Source: Hyalangium minutum | GTDB lineage: Bacteria > Myxococcota > Myxococcia > Myxococcales > Myxococcaceae | Direction of reading: 5' to 3' | DNA length: 64,000 bases | NCBI RefSeq assembly: GCF_000737315.1 | Contig: NZ_JMCB01000021.1 | Location: 1 to 64,000, forward strand | Part shown: positions 1,163 through 33,311 of the stretch, in pieces | How positions within the stretch are numbered: the first letter of the stretch is position 1 | Layout: each line of letters starts with the position of its first letter | Program-made: the position numbers and the translations under genes | The notes under the pieces: model-generated | Told to the model about the DNA's origin: nothing | The model's database searches: none | Seen by the model: the letters and a program-made list of their open reading frames with translations, nothing else

Positions 1163-3403
1163 CTACCGCAGGTACTGCCCGGTCAGCGAGCGCTTCGCTT
1201 TCACCAACTCCGCTGGCGTGCCCTCGAAGATCACCTCGCCGCCCTTGCTGCCCCCCTCAGGCCCCAGGTCGATGATCCAATCCGCGCTGCGGATGACGTC
1301 GAGGTTGTGCTCGATCACGATCACCGTGTTCCCGCCGTCGACGAGGCGATCGATGATCCCCATCAGGTGCGTGATATCGGACATGTGCAATCCCGTCGTC
1401 GGCTCGTCCATGACGTAGACGCTGCCGTCCTTATGCAGTTCGCTGGCGAGCTTGATGCGCTGGCACTCCCCGCCGGAAAGGGTGCTCAGCGGCTGGCCGA
1501 GCGTGAGGTACGCGAGCCCCACGTCGTGCATCGCCTGCAGCTTGCGAACGATCTCCTTGCGCTTTTGAAACAACTCCACCGCCTGCGCCACCGTCATCGC
1601 GAGCACATCGCTGATCGACTTCCCGTCGAGCTTGTACGCCAGCACGTCGTCCTTGAAACGGCGGCCCTGGCACACCTCGCACGGTGATTTGAACGCATCG
1701 AGGAACGAGAGATCGGTGTAGACCACTCCCGATCCGTTGCACGCTTCGCACGCGCCTTTCGAGTTGAAGCTGAACAGCCCCGCGTCCACCTTGTTGGCCG
1801 ACGCGAACGCCTTGCGCAGATCATCCATCACGCCGGTGTACGTTGCGGGGTTGCTGCGCGTGGAGGTTCCGACGGCGGACTGATCGATCACGATCGCGTC
1901 GGGATGCTGCACGAGGAACACATCGTTGATGAGCGAGCTCTTTCCTGAGCCCGCGACGCCGGTCACCGCGGTGAGCACGCCCTTGGGGATGTCGACGGAG
2001 ATGCTCTTCAGGTTGTTCGCGCGTGCGTTCTTGATGCGCAGCTGGCCGGTGGGTTTGCGCACATCCTTCTTGATCGGCAGCGCCTGCGTGAGATGGCGGC
2101 CGGTGAGCGTGTCGGATTTGAGAAGCTTTTCGTATGTGCCTTCGAAGACGATCGTCCCGCCGCTGCGGCCCGCGCCCGGCCCCACATCGACGATGTGATC
2201 GGCGGCTTCGATCACAGCGGGGTCGTGCTCGACGACGATCACGGTGTTGCCCTTGTCGCGCAGTTTCCCGAGCAGCTCGTTGAGGCGATGCACGTCGCGC
2301 GGGTGAAGGCCCACGCTCGGCTCGTCAAAGATGTACATCACATCTACGAGGCTGCTGCCGAGGTGCTTCACCATCCGCACGCGCTGCGATTCCCCGCCGG
2401 ACAGCGTGTCAGTCTCTCGGTCGAGGCTCAGGTATTCGAGCCCGATATCGACGATGGCCTGCAGCCGCTCGACGAGCGCATTCACGATCGGCCCGGCCTT
2501 GGGCTCTTTGATCGCGCGCACCACCTTCAACAGCTCGCCGACCTCCATCGACGACAATTCAGCGATGTTGTGGCCGTTGATCTTGCTCGCGAGTGCGGCG
2601 GGGTTCAAGCGCGCGCCCTTGCACGACGGACATTCGCGCGGCTTGAGGTACGGCATCACCGCTTTCTGCGTGCGCTCGCTGAGCGTCTTGATGTCGCGCT
2701 GCACGTACGAGCGTTCGATCTTGGCGATGACGCCGGCGTAGGTGAGGTTGATGGTCTTCCCGCCGAACTGCGCCTTGAACTTGCGATCCTTGCCGTGGAG
2801 CAGCAGCTCCATTTCGTCCTTCGTGAACTTGCTGAGCTTCTTGTCATTGTCGAAGAAGCCGCTCAACGTGTACGCCTGCACGTCCCAGTCGTTGAAGAAC
2901 GGGACCTGTACCGCGCCCTCATTGAGCGACTTGCTCATGTCGAGGAAGTCGTCGGAGACGACACCGACCTTCTTCCCGAGGCCATTGCAGTCGGGACACG
3001 CGCCGCGCGGATCGTTGAACGAATACGCGATCGCCCCGCCCGCCGACGGCTTACCCACGCGCGAGAACAGCAGGCGCAGCACGCCATGGATATCGGTCAC
3101 CGTGCCGACGGTGGAATGCGATCCGCCGCCGAGCCGCTTCTGGTCGACGATCACCGCCATGGTGAGGTTTTCGATCGCGTCGGCGTCGGGCTGCGGGTAC
3201 TTGGGTAGGAAGTTGCGGATGAACAGCGAGAAGTTCTCGTAGAGCTGGCGCTGGGCCTCCGTCGCCAGCGTGTCGAACACGATCGACGATTTCCCCGAGC
3301 CCGAGACGCCGGTGAAGATCGTGAGCTTGCGCTTGGGAATCTGGAGCGTGACGTCCTTGAGGTTGTTTTCGCGCGCGCCGCGGATGGAGATGAACTCGGT
3401 CAT
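1163..3403 (-). CDS. Class II UvrA-like ABC ATPase (DrrC/Ecm16-type), 746 aa
   Basis: Two Walker A motifs ([16 protein letters not shown]), two LSGGE signatures and CxxC zinc motifs; about 200 aa shorter than canonical UvrA. Confidence 0.9.
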
Positions 3404-3587
3404 GGGGGCTTGATACAGGAGAAGGGGGGGGCGCGCGCAATGGTGCGGTGCCAGCCGCCGAACTTCATTCCCACCGGTTATCGTTGGATTCCACGAAGCC
3501 AGTCTCTCGCAGCACTCGCGGGTGCTTGGACACGGGTTCGGCTCCGCGATGGGGTGACGTTAACGACGAAAGGTACGAGCAGAGTGC

Positions 3588-4439
3588 TCAGTGCGCGGCG
3601 CCGGTATGAGCGGTAATGGCATTGGCGATGGTGGGCCAGTCCGTCTCGTGCAGCTCGTGCCCTGCATCCTCGAGCGTGACCAGCTTCGCGCCCGGCACCG
3701 CCCGGCTCAGGGCGATGCCATGCGCGTAAGCAACGACGGGGTCCAGCGCGCCGTGGATGATGAGCAGGGGCGCCTGGAGCTCATGGGTCCGGCCGTACCA
3801 GCGCTCGCCGCCCGTGAGGACCGTATAGTTCATCATGCTCTGGAGGTTGTGCGAGCGACGGAACTCCGCCGCTGCCACGCGGCGCGCCAGGGCCTCATCG
3901 TAAGGCCGGCGCCCGCTGGAGTTCAGGCGCCCCGCCTTCACCATGAACTCGAGAACGGCGGCCTCGTCGCTCCAGTCCAGGGTGGCCGCCGTCCCGAAGT
4001 GTGCGAGCAGCGCCGGTGAGAGGGGCGGGGGCGTGAAGCCCAGATCGCCGAGAAACTCCGCGCTGATCAGTGTGAGGGAGAGGACTCGCTCCGGAGCCTT
4101 CAATGCCACGATTTGCGAGAGCATCCCCCCGAGTGACATCCCCACCAGGTGGGCTCGCGCGAGGCCATAGCCGTCCAGCACGGCGATGACGTCATCCGCG
4201 AGGTCATCGACGGTGTAGCCCGGGGCTCCCGGGGGATACGTTGTGGAGCGGCCCATGTCGCGCTGGTCGTAGCGGACAACAAACCGCCCCGCCGCGACCA
4301 GCATGGCGACCAGCCCATCGGGCCACCACTTCATGGACGACATCGCTCCCATGATCAGGAGGATGGGCGGGTCGTCCGGCGAACCAAAGGACTCCGTGCA
4401 GAGACGGATGCCACGGCTTTCAATCCAGCGCTCGGTCAT
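3588..4439 (-). CDS. Alpha/beta-hydrolase, EstT/EstX-like putative macrolide esterase (283 aa)
   Basis: Start MTERW follows a GGAGGAAGGGG RBS. Triad motifs GMSLGG, HGALD and GHELH. LCTESFG, RYDxRDxGxST, AEFxR and GHELHxxDW match EstT as I recall it. Confidence 0.85.
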   Translation of the reverse strand: MTERWIESRGIRLCTESFGSPDDPPILLIMGAMSSMKWWPDGLVAMLVAAGRFVVRYDQRDMGRSTTYPPGAPGYTVDDLADDVIAVLDGYGLARAHLVGMSLGGMLSQIVALKAPERVLSLTLISAEFLGDLGFTPPPLSPALLAHFGTAATLDWSDEAAVLEFMVKAGRLNSSGRRPYDEALARRVAAAEFRRSHNLQSMMNYTVLTGGERWYGRTHELQAPLLIIHGALDPVVAYAHGIALSRAVPGAKLVTLEDAGHELHETDWPTIANAITAHTGAAH

Positions 4440-4482
4440 GTGAACCCCTTCCTCCGTGCAACGTGTCATTCCGCAGGAAGAA

Positions 4483-4511
4483 TTAATAACCGACACGACG
4501 GTTATAAACAA
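4483..4511 (-). promoter_or_regulatory. Sigma70-type promoter with an MphR-type operator filling the spacer
   Basis: Minus strand reads TTGTTT-ATAACCGTCGTGTCGGT(17)-TATTAA. Inverted repeat ATAACCG-N6-CGGTTAT at 4486-4505. Confidence 0.8.
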
Positions 4512-4555
4512 GTCTGGATGGGGATCTTGGCCTCCGGACAGCATGAAGGGGCGGA

Positions 4556-5134
4556 TCAGCGCTTCGGAAGCTCGAAGGACTCGTGGGGGAACAGCAGACC
4601 GAGCACCCGGCGCACGCGCTCCAGCACATAGCGGGTCAGCGAGGGCTCCCGCTCCACCATCCACTGCATCGTCGCACCTGCGATGACGTCCTGCAGCACG
4701 GCGGCGACTTCATTCCGCTCGGCCATCTTGGGAAGCCGGGCGGCGATGGCATCGCGGACCATCAGGTTCCTTTCGAGGGCCATGCGCCTCAGGGTGGTGT
4801 CTCTCAGGTCCTGCCAAGCGAGGAGCAGGTAGCTGTCGAGTCCCTCCCCCGTGCCCATGCCGGAGATGATCTCCGTCAGGAAGCGCCAGAGTCCCTGTGC
4901 TCCCACTTCCACGGGCATGCTCGCGAGATAGTCGCGCCGCTGCGCACCCGAGCGCTCCATGACACGCCGGTACAGCGTGTCCTTGTTCTTGAAGCGCTGG
5001 ATGAGCGCGGCGCGGGACATTCCCAGCTCGGCGGCCACGTCATTCAAGGTGAACCCGGCCAGCCCGCGACGCAGCAGCACTTCCATGGTGGCATCGAGAA
5101 TGGCTTCGTCGCTGTGCAGCTTGGGCCGGGGCAC
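4556..5134 (-). CDS. mphR: TetR-family repressor, MphR(A) homolog (192 aa; GTG start)
   Basis: MPRPKLHSD..., SRAALIQRF, GAQGLWRFL, VIAGATMQW and LLFP are colinear with MphR(A) as recalled (MPRPKLKSD, SRAALIQRF, GPQGLWEFL, VIAGATMQW). Confidence 0.85.
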   Translation of the reverse strand: MPRPKLHSDEAILDATMEVLLRRGLAGFTLNDVAAELGMSRAALIQRFKNKDTLYRRVMERSGAQRRDYLASMPVEVGAQGLWRFLTEIISGMGTGEGLDSYLLLAWQDLRDTTLRRMALERNLMVRDAIAARLPKMAERNEVAAVLQDVIAGATMQWMVEREPSLTRYVLERVRRVLGLLFPHESFELPKR

Positions 5135-5141
5135 GGCCACG

Positions 5142-5156
5142 GTAACTATCACGTCG
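5142..5156 (-). promoter_or_regulatory. Second, degenerate MphR operator (possible autoregulation)
   Basis: Minus strand CGACGTGATAGTTAC lies just upstream of the GTG at 5134; 13/15 match to the recalled mph(A) operator segment CGACGTGACTGTTAC. Confidence 0.55.
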
Positions 5157-5516
5157 CGGAAGCGAGGAACGCATCCGATCCGGGGCATGGGAGCATCGAG
5201 GGCGCGGTGCGCGCGTGGGGAGCCGCCAGCCCGGAGTCAGGCAAGGTCGTGGCACGGGTCGATCAGACGCGCGAGGGCGCTCGCTAACGGCCAGCGCCTC
5301 GAGCGCCGTGCTGTGGATGCGCTCCAGCCGGGCCTGCAGCAGTACAGCCCGAGTATGGGATTGCGGAGCTCCCTCTGGCGTGGTGACAACCCTCACCAGG
5401 GAGAGGACGGCAGTCACCGGCTCGCAGCCCCTCTCTAGCCCGTGGCGCGCCTCCCTCCTATCCCCAGGCACGCGCAAGCCCTTGGAATCAGGCCGGTCTG
5501 CTCGACCCCAGCTTCG

Positions 5517-5532
5517 TGGCACGAAAGGCGCA
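5517..5532 (+). promoter_or_regulatory. Possible sigma54 (-24/-12) promoter
   Basis: TGGCACG-AAAG-GCGCA versus consensus TGGCACG-N4-TTGCW; GG and GC correctly spaced, TT missing. Confidence 0.4.
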
Positions 5533-5578
5533 ATACCCGACTTCAACGAAACACAAGCCCTTCACTGGAGTCACCACC

Positions 5579-6172
5579 ATGCCCCGCCTCGGCGCCGCCT
5601 CCTTCAAGAGCACCCCGTCCTTCACGTCCTCGCTGCGTCCCTCCGCCAGCACCTCCACTCCCCGGACGTCCTCCCCGCCGCGCTCGCCCTCTCCCTCGGC
5701 CCCGCAGAGCCCCAGCCGCAGAGACAGCTTCGAGACGCGCTCGCCCAAGCAGGAGACGGCGCCCAAGAGCCCCACCCAGCAGGAGGGTGGCGACGGCTGG
5801 GAGACGGTGAGCAGCAAGAAGAAGCCTCGCGTCCAGGGGTCGGCGGATCCGGACCGGCAGTTCAAGCAGAGCCTCCAGCAGGTCCACAACAGCCTCGACG
5901 CGAGCGTGTCCCGCATGAGCCAGCGGGAGTACGGCGAGGTCAAGGTCCCGCGCAATGGGCTGAAGCGGCTCCATGAGGAGCTGACGAAGCAGTACCACCG
6001 GCAGGAGATCCCCGGGACCAACGGCCGGGAGCAGTACTACGTCACCCGCCAGGACTTCTTCAAGAAGGGCGGCGGCTTCAACATCACCGCCCACGACGTC
6101 AGCCGGAACGGCAAGGACATCAGCAAGCAGAACGAGCGGACCTCCTGGCTCAACCTGCACGTCGTTCCCTGA
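5579..6172 (+). CDS. Hypothetical protein with Ser/Pro-rich N-terminus and a ~105-aa C-terminal domain
   Basis: ATG at 5579 with GGAG RBS; strong GC3 bias. Confidence 0.8.
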   Translation: MPRLGAASFKSTPSFTSSLRPSASTSTPRTSSPPRSPSPSAPQSPSRRDSFETRSPKQETAPKSPTQQEGGDGWETVSSKKKPRVQGSADPDRQFKQSLQQVHNSLDASVSRMSQREYGEVKVPRNGLKRLHEELTKQYHRQEIPGTNGREQYYVTRQDFFKKGGGFNITAHDVSRNGKDISKQNERTSWLNLHVVP

Positions 6173-10491: not shown

Positions 10492-10589
10492 AAACGATGT
10501 GTTGGGCAACTCCACAGCGGATCTCTACCGTGAGCAGTGTCACCGCTCGCCCGAACACCTCGCTCCCACTCTCAATCGGAGGATTCCCC

Positions 10590-11144
10590 ATGAAGACCAT
10601 GACCCAGGACTGGCAGACGCTGGCGACGAACGAGGACGCGCAGGCCCTGACCCGCGTGGCGTTCGAGCACGCGCGGGCGGGGAACACCGGCCGCCTGGCC
10701 TGGCTGCTGGCCGCGGGGCTGCCGGTGAACCTCAGCAACGAGCGAGGAGATACCCTGCTGATGGTGGCGAGCTACCACGGGCACCTGCAGACCACCCGGA
10801 TCCTGCTGGAGAACGAGGCCGATCCGGACCGCGCCAACTGCCATGGACGGATGGCGCTGGCGGGTGCGGCCTTCAAGGGAGATCTGGCCATCGCTCGGCT
10901 CCTGCTGGACCATGGCGCCCGGGTGGACGGCACCGCGCGCGATGGCAGAACGGCCCTCATGTACGCGGCCATGTGCGACCAGCTGGAGCTGCTCGAGCTG
11001 CTGGTGGCGCGAGGCTCGGAGCCGGCCCTGCAGGATGCCACGGGATGCACGGCGCTGGAGCATGCCCGCAGCACGGGGGCCCGGCGGGCCGTGGAGTGGC
11101 TCGAGCAGTTCCCCCAGGCCCACAGCCCTCTGCTGGCGGTGTAG
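10590..11144 (+). CDS. Ankyrin-repeat protein (AnkB-like)
   Basis: GDTLLMVASYHGH, ALAGAAFKG and GRTALMYAA repeats; GGAGG RBS. Confidence 0.9.
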   Translation: MKTMTQDWQTLATNEDAQALTRVAFEHARAGNTGRLAWLLAAGLPVNLSNERGDTLLMVASYHGHLQTTRILLENEADPDRANCHGRMALAGAAFKGDLAIARLLLDHGARVDGTARDGRTALMYAAMCDQLELLELLVARGSEPALQDATGCTALEHARSTGARRAVEWLEQFPQAHSPLLAV

Positions 11145-31820: not shown

Positions 31821-33311
31821 TCACGGCACCGGGCCTGCGAAGGACGTGAAGAACGGCGGGCGCGTCAGGTCCGAGGCGCAGGTGGACTTCAGCCCATCCA
31901 CGGTGCCCTGCTTCACGAAGTCCGCCATCAACGACTGCACACAGCCCAGCACCGCCGTGTTGTGCCCCACTCCCGGCACCACCACATGCAGGCTGTGGCT
32001 CAGCGTCTTCTTCGCCTCCTCGCCCCACGAGGGCGGCGTCACCGGATCCAGCTCGCCGGACAGCAACAGCGTGGGCACCGAGGACGTTACGGGATCCCGA
32101 TATCCCTCGGGCACCGTGCCCTTCGGCCATACCTTGCAGGGCTCGAGAATGTTGCGGATCTGCTGCGCACCGAACCACGTGCCCTTTGCCTCACGCACAA
32201 TCGCCTCGTCGGTGATGAAGGGCGCGTCCTCCGCGCAGACCACCGAGAAGAACATGCCGTGGCTGATCGTATCGCTCATCCCGCCTGAGATTCCCTGGCT
32301 CAGCGCGATGAACGGCGCCCAGTCGCCCTTCGTCGCCCGGTCCAGCATCAGCGGCACCAGCGTGGCGATCTCCGGCGAGTAGAGCTGGCCGAACATCATC
32401 TGCAGGAACGCGTGCCGGGACAGAGTGAACTCCTCCGGAACCCCCGTCAGCGGGTGCTTCACCTGCACCTTCTCCGGCGCCTGCGCCATCCGCTCCAGCA
32501 GCGCCTCCACCCGCTTCTTCAGGTCGGGGAACGCCTGGGCGCAGTTCACGTCCTTCTCACAGTGCTCGAAGAGCAAATCCAACGCCCGCTGCCCGTCCCT
32601 CGGCATGTAGAGCGGCAGGTACAGGCTCATGGGCGCCACGCCATCGAGGATCGCCGAGCGCACCCGGTCCGGGTGCTGCCGCATGTACACCAGCGCAGCA
32701 CGCGTCCCGTACGACACCCCCCACAGGTTCAGCTTCTCGTAGCCCAGCGCCTCGCGCACCTCATCCAGGTCCTCCATGGCGATGGGCGTGGTGTAGAGGC
32801 GCGGGTCCGCGTCATAGCCCTTCAGGCACTTCTGGAAGTCCTCCTCGCGGAATGCGTCATCGAACTTCTCCGCAAGCCCGCTGTCCTCGGGATCCGGTGC
32901 GCACTTCAGCGCTCCCGAGCCGCCCGTACCCCGTTGGTCCACCAACAAGATGTCTCGGTTGCGGTGGATGCGGTCCACCATCTGCAAGATCGTCACCTTC
33001 GAGGCCGCCTGCCCCGGGCCTCCCGCCAGCAGCACCAGCGGATCCGGCTCCGCCGAGGCTGCCAGTGCGGGCACTACCACCACGCGCAGAGGAATCTTCC
33101 GCCCCTGCTTCGCCACCCGGTCCTCGAAGACTTCATAGGTGCCGCACAGGGTCTGGTACTCAATGCCCTCGACGCGGCAGGAGCTCAGCGCCACCTTGGG
33201 CGCGGACGGCTCCGATGGACTCCGGCTGCACGCCGCCGCGAACACCCCCACGGACACCAGGAGCAGGACGAGGCGTGGGACAGGGTTGGGGGTTTCGCCA
33301 GGCACGCGCAT
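31821..33311 (-). CDS. Lipoprotein alpha/beta-hydrolase, TAP-like (S33) peptidase
   Basis: FAAAC lipobox; GGPG, DQRGTG, GVSYG, GELDPVTP and GHN motifs. Confidence 0.9.
   Translation of the reverse strand: MRVPGETPNPVPRLVLLLVSVGVFAAACSRSPSEPSAPKVALSSCRVEGIEYQTLCGTYEVFEDRVAKQGRKIPLRVVVVPALAASAEPDPLVLLAGGPGQAASKVTILQMVDRIHRNRDILLVDQRGTGGSGALKCAPDPEDSGLAEKFDDAFREEDFQKCLKGYDADPRLYTTPIAMEDLDEVREALGYEKLNLWGVSYGTRAALVYMRQHPDRVRSAILDGVAPMSLYLPLYMPRDGQRALDLLFEHCEKDVNCAQAFPDLKKRVEALLERMAQAPEKVQVKHPLTGVPEEFTLSRHAFLQMMFGQLYSPEIATLVPLMLDRATKGDWAPFIALSQGISGGMSDTISHGMFFSVVCAEDAPFITDEAIVREAKGTWFGAQQIRNILEPCKVWPKGTVPEGYRDPVTSSVPTLLLSGELDPVTPPSWGEEAKKTLSHSLHVVVPGVGHNTAVLGCVQSLMADFVKQGTVDGLKSTCASDLTRPPFFTSFAGPVP

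Follow-up and report, generated by a model that had tools for sequence, protein, structure and literature searches.

We analyzed a 64,000-nucleotide stretch of the genome of the myxobacterium Hyalangium minutum, namely, positions 1 to 64,000 of contig JMCB01000021.1 (assembly GCA_000737315.1), here called the window. Our subject is a pair of genes near its start, one encoding a TetR-family regulator that resembles MphR(A), the macrolide sensor of the plasmid mph(A)-mrx(A)-mphR(A) operon, and the other encoding an α/β-hydrolase that resembles the macrolide esterases EstX and EstT. The pair and the elements between the two genes are as follows.

4556 to 5134, minus strand: mphR-like gene for a TetR-family repressor, 192 amino acids (aa) from a GTG at 5134
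4486 to 4505, no strand: operator palindrome ATAACCG-TCGTGT-CGGTTAT, with perfect 7-nt arms
4483 to 4511, minus strand: putative esterase promoter, with −35 TTGTTT (4506 to 4511), a 17-nt spacer occupied by the operator, and −10 TATTAA (4483 to 4488)
3588 to 4439, minus strand: gene for an Est-type α/β-hydrolase of 283 aa, a candidate macrolide esterase, with the ribosome-binding site (RBS) GGAGGAAGGGG at 4445 to 4455

The TetR gene lies directly upstream of the co-oriented hydrolase gene, and the two are 116 bp apart (4440 to 4555), an arrangement that the first-pass annotation, made from the sequence alone, had described correctly. At its longest, the TetR open reading frame (ORF) runs from 4556 to 5188 with an ATG start (210 aa). 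Similarity to MphR(A) and to every other relative sets in only at the GTG at 5134, which makes 4556 to 5134 the likely gene; read from there, its N terminus is V-PRPKLHSD, compared to MPRPKLKSD in MphR(A). Gene callers have also used starts at 5140 (194 aa) and 5188 (210 aa), and the end coordinate of 5160 given in the earlier annotation falls between two possible starts. The longest mechanical ORF of the hydrolase spans 3588 to 4664. Its true start is the ATG at 4439 (MTERWIESRG...), with the RBS just 5′, and the extension to 4664 was rejected as an artifact of high G+C content.

Pfam recognized only the generic TetR_N domain in the regulator (2.1e-12), and an NCBIfam search returned no specific model. 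Among solved structures, its best match was MphR(A) (PDB 3frq; E value, 3.1e-44; residues 19 to 207 against residues 2 to 190 of 195), while the remaining solved TetR proteins matched in the helix-turn-helix (HTH) segment alone, with E values of 3.5e-07 or worse. A tblastn search against plasmids, which yielded 2,773 records with at least 80% coverage, gave 45.8% identity to plasmid mphR(A) over 98% of the length. The AlphaFold2 model of the regulator (predicted local distance difference test score [pLDDT], 92.5) superposed on the MphR(A)-erythromycin complex (3frq) with template modeling (TM) scores of 0.91/0.95 and a root mean square deviation (RMSD) of 1.5 Å, compared to a TM score of at most 0.69 for the best non-MphR TetR structure. 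In the HTH segment, SRAALIQRF (S40 to F48), which we read as the putative recognition helix, is the same in all 17 aligned family members, MphR(A) among them. Together, sequence and model support the assignment of the window TetR to the MphR(A) family. Some MphR-like regulators already carry the automatic Joint Genome Institute (JGI) label "macrolide resistance operon repressor."

The hydrolase was scored against the curated NCBIfam equivalog models NF052610, NF033124, and NF041759. It reached 357.7 bits with macro_16_ester (cut-off, 420), 317.7 bits with the EstX model (cut-off, 600), and 293.6 bits with the EstT model (cut-off, 450). Its alignment with EstX (PDB 11tv) ran without gaps across positions 2 to 279 (E value, 2e-91; 310 bits), and three EstT structures matched with E values from 1.3e-77 to 4e-66. 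The nearest nonmacrolide enzymes in the PDB, the lipase ORF17 and the aclacinomycin methylesterase RdmC, reached 127 and 121 bits, respectively. Identity was 51.6% to EstX and 43.2% to plasmid EstT, and in our alignment EstX and EstT are only 44.8% identical to each other, so the window esterase is nearer to EstX than EstT is. In the residue numbering of EstX (PMC13389593), the catalytic triad Ser102-Asp233-His261 is conserved, and both oxyanion residues, Ala32 and Leu103, are present. No signal peptide was found, so the enzyme is predicted to be cytoplasmic, like EstX.

The structural comparison pointed the same way. The AlphaFold2 model of the hydrolase (pLDDT, 93.2) superposed on the EstX-tylosin complex (11tv) with TM scores of 0.95/0.96 and an RMSD of 1.5 Å. 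Against the EstX and EstT structures, TM scores were 0.95 to 0.96 over 280 to 281 columns, whereas RdmC and ORF17 needed 299. These two enzymes are 298 and 297 residues long, respectively, compared to 283 for the hydrolase, and their extra cap elements are said to block the 5-pocket (PMC13389593). Because the EstX alignment is gap-free, the hydrolase lacks the approximately 15 extra residues of RdmC and ORF17, which may be these cap elements. The same study names a four-helix cap and an open 5-pocket as the fold specific to Est enzymes, and, as judged by alignment and model superposition, the hydrolase appears to have this fold, with a presumably open pocket. Thus, our data support its placement in the Est-type (EstX/EstT) family.

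The first-pass annotation had proposed that the TetR aligns end to end with MphR(A) and that the hydrolase, with an intact Ser-Asp-His triad, is akin to EstT and EstX. All three statements are borne out by the figures above. Both similarities exceed generic family motifs, as the next-best TetR match has an E value of only 3.5e-07 and the nonmacrolide hydrolases, at 127 and 121 bits, fall far short of the 310 bits of EstX.

The spacer between the two genes carries the operator palindrome, whose arms reach 10 nt (4483 to 4508) if one mismatch is allowed. ATAACCG-N6-CGGTTAT has a single perfect occurrence in the window. Within three mismatches, one other site was found, at 32197; it was rejected as an operator, since it lies inside a coding ORF and approximately 0.4 chance matches are expected. 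Upstream of mph(A) on an Escherichia coli plasmid, the corresponding sequence is TTGAAT-ATAACCGACGTGACTGTTAC-ATT, compared to TTGTTT-ATAACCGTCGTGTCGGTTAT-TAA in the window. Twenty of 25 bases are identical, including the −35-like hexamer, and the palindrome and both hexamers are in register: the palindrome aligns with ATAACCGACGTGACTGTTAC, and TTGAAT and TACATT flank the mph(A) operator at positions equivalent to those of the window hexamers. The −35 and −10 elements of the esterase promoter are assigned tentatively from this correspondence. The mph(A) segment is reportedly the operator protected by MphR(A) (Noguchi et al. 2000) and corresponds to the ETR element of the E.REX system; the comparison of the operators stands without it.

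We then aligned the spacers of 11 Est-type loci with the region upstream of mph(A). The sole conserved block consisted of the −35 hexamer, the operator, and TATnAAT, and the rest of these spacers, including their length, was variable. Conservation confined to the family operator and the hexamers of the putative esterase promoter supports a functional wiring of TetR and esterase beyond adjacency. The first-pass annotation had also regarded the TetR as wired to the hydrolase, and both this operator and the conservation of the pair in other genomes uphold that view. A second operator 5′ of the TetR gene (5100 to 5620) was not found, even with five mismatches allowed, so there is no evidence for autoregulation of the TetR.

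Other readings of the spacer were considered and set aside. In a terminator scan, the minus-strand palindrome was called terminator-like; it has only 3 G-C pairs, and the terminator reading was rejected because the same palindrome precedes mph(A), where no gene lies 5′. In the esterase leader, a hairpin at 4448 to 4480 that would pair with the RBS was rejected as an attenuator, given its energy of −14.1 kcal/mol, a z score of −1.42, and 21 of 200 shuffles that equaled it; the hairpin is not conserved in orthologs. A lone half-site, ATAACCG, occurs on the minus strand at 3474 to 3480, between the stop of the esterase gene and the start of a UvrA-like gene; it has no partner and is probably due to chance.

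To place the pair among related systems, we surveyed representative genomes with a profile of 17 MphR-like proteins, which yielded 80 loci (designated by L numbers). Allowing up to one mismatch, the palindrome had 59 occurrences across 826 kb, spread over 53 of the 80 loci, compared to 0.08 in shuffled sequences; with two mismatches allowed, approximately 72 of the loci carried it. It always lay 50 to 130 bp 5′ of the cargo gene, whether this gene was downstream of the repressor gene, upstream of it, or divergent. As cargo, 43 of the loci carried a radical-SAM methyltransferase of the RlmN/Cfr family, approximately 24 an Mph macrolide phosphotransferase, and 8 an Est-type esterase, and all identifiable operator-linked cargo was homologous to genes for resistance to macrolides or other ribosome-targeting drugs. 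The eight Est loci comprise six Myxococcus/Pyxidicoccus genomes (L002 to L007), a Phenylobacterium metagenome-assembled genome (MAG; L043), and an alphaproteobacterial MAG (L055). In L002 to L007, the regulator is 71 to 91% and the esterase 59 to 88% identical to its window counterpart. Myxococcus xanthus CP017174.1 also holds the TetR-esterase pair (L166, 3323 to 4873). In a neighbor-joining tree without support values, MphR-like regulators clustered by cargo type, and the two groups coupled to Est enzymes, one myxobacterial and one alphaproteobacterial, were not sisters. These data suggest that Est cargo may have been recruited more than once by MphR-like regulators.

From the esterase side, Est homologs form more than 2,132 clusters at an E value below 1e-30. 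We surveyed 80 metagenomic Est loci, 50 of which extended 700 bp or more upstream of the gene, and an MphR-like gene with the operator was present in 1 of these 50 (L155). The pairing is thus a minority but recurrent architecture. No regulator adjoined a clinical estX cassette beside aadA1, a clinical estT beside ISVsa3 and tet(X4), or an Est homolog on a rhizobial plasmid. The two genes might be neighbors by chance, with the TetR controlling something else and the esterase expressed independently; TetR genes are very common beside hydrolase genes, and the other 49 metagenomic loci with sufficient upstream sequence lack this TetR. Nonetheless, the family operator sits exactly in the upstream region of the esterase and nowhere else near the TetR, the pair stays intact while both flanks change, and the same architecture recurs in distant lineages (L043, L055, and L155). 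We consider chance adjacency very unlikely.

The change of flanks was evident when the genes around the window pair, namely, those for the UvrA paralog, a 197-aa ORF, an HYR-domain protein, an ankyrin-repeat-like ORF (10497 to 11144), and an aldehyde dehydrogenase, were sought in L002 to L007: none lay closer than 6 kb to the pair. Among named organisms, Pyxidicoccus and Myxococcus hold the best matches to the pair (82 to 91%), whereas the flanking aldehyde dehydrogenase gene, of housekeeping type, is closest to Cystobacter, with identities of 90% or more to the C. fuscus and C. ferrugineus proteins, which places the host in the Cystobacter/Archangium group of myxobacteria. The pair is also present with unrelated flanks in two alphaproteobacterial genomes and one metagenome contig. 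These comparisons are only suggestive of a movement of the pair as a unit among myxobacteria, and the transfer reading is weakened by the fact that no mobility genes were seen beside it. The flanks also bear on whether the pair belongs to a cluster for macrolide biosynthesis in the host, serving there in self-resistance or tailoring. Myxobacteria make many macrolactones, and esterases and TetR regulators do occur in such clusters. However, the window contains no ORF of megasynthase size, the longest being 1,245 aa and encoding the HYR-domain surface protein; the flanks of the pair differ wholly between species; and next to it lie genes for a UvrA paralog and a surface protein and one uncharacterized gene. 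A biosynthetic role of this kind is therefore highly improbable.

We compared the locus to the systems from which its parts are known. With the mph(A)-mrx(A)-mphR(A) plasmid operon (3frq/3g56), it shares the repressor family (46% identity; TM score, 0.91 to 0.95) with an identical recognition-helix sequence, a palindromic operator positioned alike with respect to the −35-like and −10-like hexamers, and, as predicted for the window, a sensor that governs a drug-inactivating enzyme. It differs in its cargo, a candidate lactone-opening esterase in place of a 2′-phosphotransferase and a major facilitator superfamily (MFS) protein. The window repressor gene lies 5′ of the operator, outside the regulated unit, and is probably not autoregulated, whereas mphR(A) is the last gene of its operon; moreover, the window locus is chromosomal in a myxobacterium, with neither IS26 nor IS6100 nearby. 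Compared to EstX, an integron cassette, and EstT, from Sphingobacterium, Bacillus, and plasmids, the window esterase has the same length, fold (TM score, 0.95), triad, and oxyanion hole and shares with EstX in particular the gap-free alignment and the cytoplasmic form; it differs in falling below the equivalog cut-off, in a mosaic 14-pocket, and in having a dedicated sensor gene, which the inspected clinical estX and estT examples lack. Other MphR-family regulons, with an RlmN/Cfr-like enzyme, an Mph kinase, or a kinase together with an MFS protein and Ere, have the same repressor family and an operator directly 5′ of the cargo and differ in the resistance mechanism.

Est-type macrolide esterases were recognized only in 2023 (PNAS 2023, 2026), and the literature on them that we searched made no mention of MphR, a repressor, or inducibility. 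The first-pass annotation had known of no described MphR-esterase pairing, and none appeared in the literature searched. Thus, both parts and the regulatory logic were already known, while the combination of MphR and Est is new. A further claim of that annotation, that the locus is a possible environmental reservoir for both clinical components, did not hold up. The protein families and the operator are indeed the same, but identities of only 46% to MphR(A), 52% to EstX, and 43% to EstT are too low for a recent source; other environmental genomes hold operons with MphR at 81 to 83%, Mph at 73 to 77%, and Mrx at 72 to 76% identity to the clinical proteins, and the inspected clinical estX and estT genes are unregulated cassettes beside integron or ISVsa3 genes. 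An origin of clinical mphR(A) and estX/estT in this locus, or a recent reservoir role, is thus extremely doubtful.

Given the families to which both proteins were assigned, the operator found at the putative esterase promoter, and the wiring conserved in other genomes, we propose that the locus is a self-contained two-gene inducible drug-inactivation cassette consisting of an MphR-type repressor and an Est-type esterase, a reading that we regard as fairly probable. The TetR dimer would probably be made constitutively, as its gene lies 5′ of the operator with no second site before it. It would bind ATAACCG-N6-CGGTTAT, which takes up the 17-nt promoter spacer and extends into the −10 element, such that binding would block transcription of the esterase. 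A macrolide in the cytoplasm would occupy the C-terminal pocket of the repressor and free the DNA, as erythromycin does with MphR(A). The cytoplasmic Ser-His-Asp esterase would then be made and would open the lactone ring at its ester bond; as EstX and EstT suggest by analogy, likely substrates are 16-membered macrolides of the tylosin or leucomycin type. In favor of such substrates, the four characterized macrolide esterases are only 44 to 66% identical to one another, and all hydrolyze tylosin and tylvalosin (PMC13389593). Ring opening would destroy the antibiotic and presumably the inducer as well, so that the circuit would shut itself off by negative feedback. We infer that macrolides are both inducer and substrate from homology and from the other cargo genes of the family, and DNA binding by the TetR and the feedback loop are likewise inferred.

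Several points weigh against this proposal. The hydrolase falls under every NCBIfam equivalog cut-off, even though these Est models are its best matches, and all MphR-coupled esterases score 290 to 358 bits against the cut-off of 420, compared to 437 for EstX itself. Its 14-pocket is a mosaic in which Trp38 is as in EstX, Glu192 is as in EstT, and Met166 and Gly170 are unlike either. The four characterized Est enzymes accept only 16-membered rings; none acts on erythromycin or tulathromycin, and substrate range, according to the authors, is not predictable from sequence (PMC13389593). As a sensor, MphR(A) is used mainly for 14- and 15-membered macrolides, and a response to josamycin is also reported. 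Its best-known ligands are therefore rings that Est enzymes leave intact, and the specificities of sensor and esterase may or may not match; given 46% identity, the ligand range of the window sensor may well differ from that of MphR(A). Finally, the promoter hexamers are weak, and a consensus scan detected no σ70-like site in the spacer promoter region.

These points leave room for the same wiring with other chemistry, in which the pair would respond to and cleave another ester or lactone natural product in place of classical macrolide antibiotics, such as a nonribosomal macrolactone or a polyketide methyl ester from soil competitors, prey, or the host itself. The subthreshold score of the esterase, the modest identity of the sensor to MphR(A), and the presence of RdmC, an anthracycline methylesterase, among the nearest nonmacrolide relatives are all compatible with it, as is the very large number of Est homologs (more than 2,132 clusters), many of which are said to have unknown roles (PMC13389593). 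However, the identifiable cargo of the operator is always homologous to resistance genes for macrolides or other ribosome-targeting drugs; the esterase is more similar in sequence to EstX than EstT is, and EstX and EstT both hydrolyze tylosin; and the gap-free EstX alignment leaves no room for the extra length of RdmC and ORF17. We view the alternative as a serious but unlikely one and retain the macrolide-inducible cassette as the preferred interpretation.

A broader proposal, which we put forward tentatively and at somewhat less than even chances, is that MphR-family repressors are a portable macrolide-sensing switch that has been rewired to at least four unrelated mechanisms and that the myxobacterial sensor is adapted to those 16-membered macrolides which the partner esterase inactivates. 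The four mechanisms are phosphorylation, Est-type ring opening, Ere-type ring opening, and RlmN/Cfr-like rRNA methylation, among which the recognition helix and operator are unchanged. If true, this would be the first case of an Est-type esterase under natural regulation, and the pair could serve directly as a biosensor whose specificity is unlike that of MphR(A); it would also provide context-based evidence that a large subthreshold Est branch consists of true macrolide esterases.

The pairing has further uses. A macrolide-type sensor before an Est homolog would be independent evidence that this unnamed branch handles macrolides, and gene context would thereby add functional evidence exactly where the curated NCBI models stop. 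MphR(A) is widely used as a sensor of 14- and 15-membered macrolides, and its relatives are biosensor candidates whose ligand range may differ. The pair in M. xanthus makes induction and resistance genetically tractable. Since kinases, esterases of two kinds, and RlmN/Cfr-like rRNA methyltransferases all stand behind a single repressor-operator pair, the operator motif could also be a search handle for unrecognized genes for resistance to macrolides or other ribosome-targeting drugs.

Several loci of the repressor-side survey had features of their own. RlmN/Cfr-like cargo was found in L008 to L012, L014, L016, L018 to L020, L022 to L042, L045 to L051, L068, L072, and L079. The encoded proteins, such as that at L022:6664-7734, have approximately 350 aa and score 275 bits with the RlmN model (cut-off, 290) and approximately 200 bits with Cfr models. 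Some copies are 96 to 100% identical across unrelated genera and MAGs, namely, Allorhizobium, Paracoccus, Brevundimonas, Kaistia, Parapusillimonas, and Nitrospira and Hyphomicrobium MAGs, and a relaxase-like gene is often located 5′ of these loci. These features suggest that the unit may be a mobile ribosome-methylation determinant under a macrolide-type sensor; a link between MphR and RlmN/Cfr was absent from the literature searched. In an uncultured Myxococcales MAG (L021:5998-10022), an operator lies at the start of an MphR-like gene, behind which come genes for an APH-like kinase, an MFS transporter, and an erythromycin esterase of the Ere type (168 bits with the EreA model); this is a fourth kind of cargo for MphR-like sensors. 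Complete mph-mrx-mphR operons were present in L067, L070, L071, L074 to L076, and L078, with Mph 73 to 77%, Mrx 72 to 76%, and MphR 70 to 83% identical to the clinical operon and with a more perfect operator, which makes them far closer to that operon than the window genes are. They occur in MAGs labeled Polyangiaceae, Kofleriaceae, Gemmatimonadaceae, and Brocadiaceae, and the binning of such elements is unreliable. The pair in L005, a 969-kb contig titled "Comamonas sp. KCTC 72670" (BNCN01000002.1), is 81 to 83% identical to that of the window, as are the Myxococcus loci; this record is probably mislabeled or from a truly Myxococcus-like organism. In M. xanthus CP017174.1 (L165/L166:2529-3287), a second α/β-hydrolase gene (252 aa) lies directly 5′ of the MphR-like gene in the same orientation and has no counterpart in the window.

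Downstream of the esterase gene in the window lies the gene for the UvrA paralog (1163 to 3403, minus strand; 746 aa). The protein is a class II, DrrC/UvrA2-like member that lacks the segment matching UvrA profile positions of approximately 120 to 268, including the UvrB-binding region; related proteins confer protection from natural products that bind DNA. Proteins with at least 90% identity to it are encoded in Bryobacteraceae (Acidobacteriota) MAGs and in many metagenomes, its region has a G+C content of 0.62 compared to 0.66 to 0.70, and the gene is missing from the orthologous loci, such that it looks recently transferred. Cotranscription of the pair with this gene was judged unsupported, since the gene is missing at all orthologous loci and differs in composition and ancestry. 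On the other side, a 197-aa gene divergent from the TetR gene (5579 to 6172, plus strand) encodes a protein with a Ser/Pro-rich N-terminal half and no Pfam match, and its region has an unusually high AT skew of 0.18 to 0.22. At the window start, a partial gene for a CARDB-domain protein occupies positions 1 to 1003 on the minus strand. The translation of an ORF antisense to it (38 to 1084) shows three near-identical repeats of approximately 110 aa, which indicates that the CARDB gene holds tandem domain repeats of approximately 330 bp.

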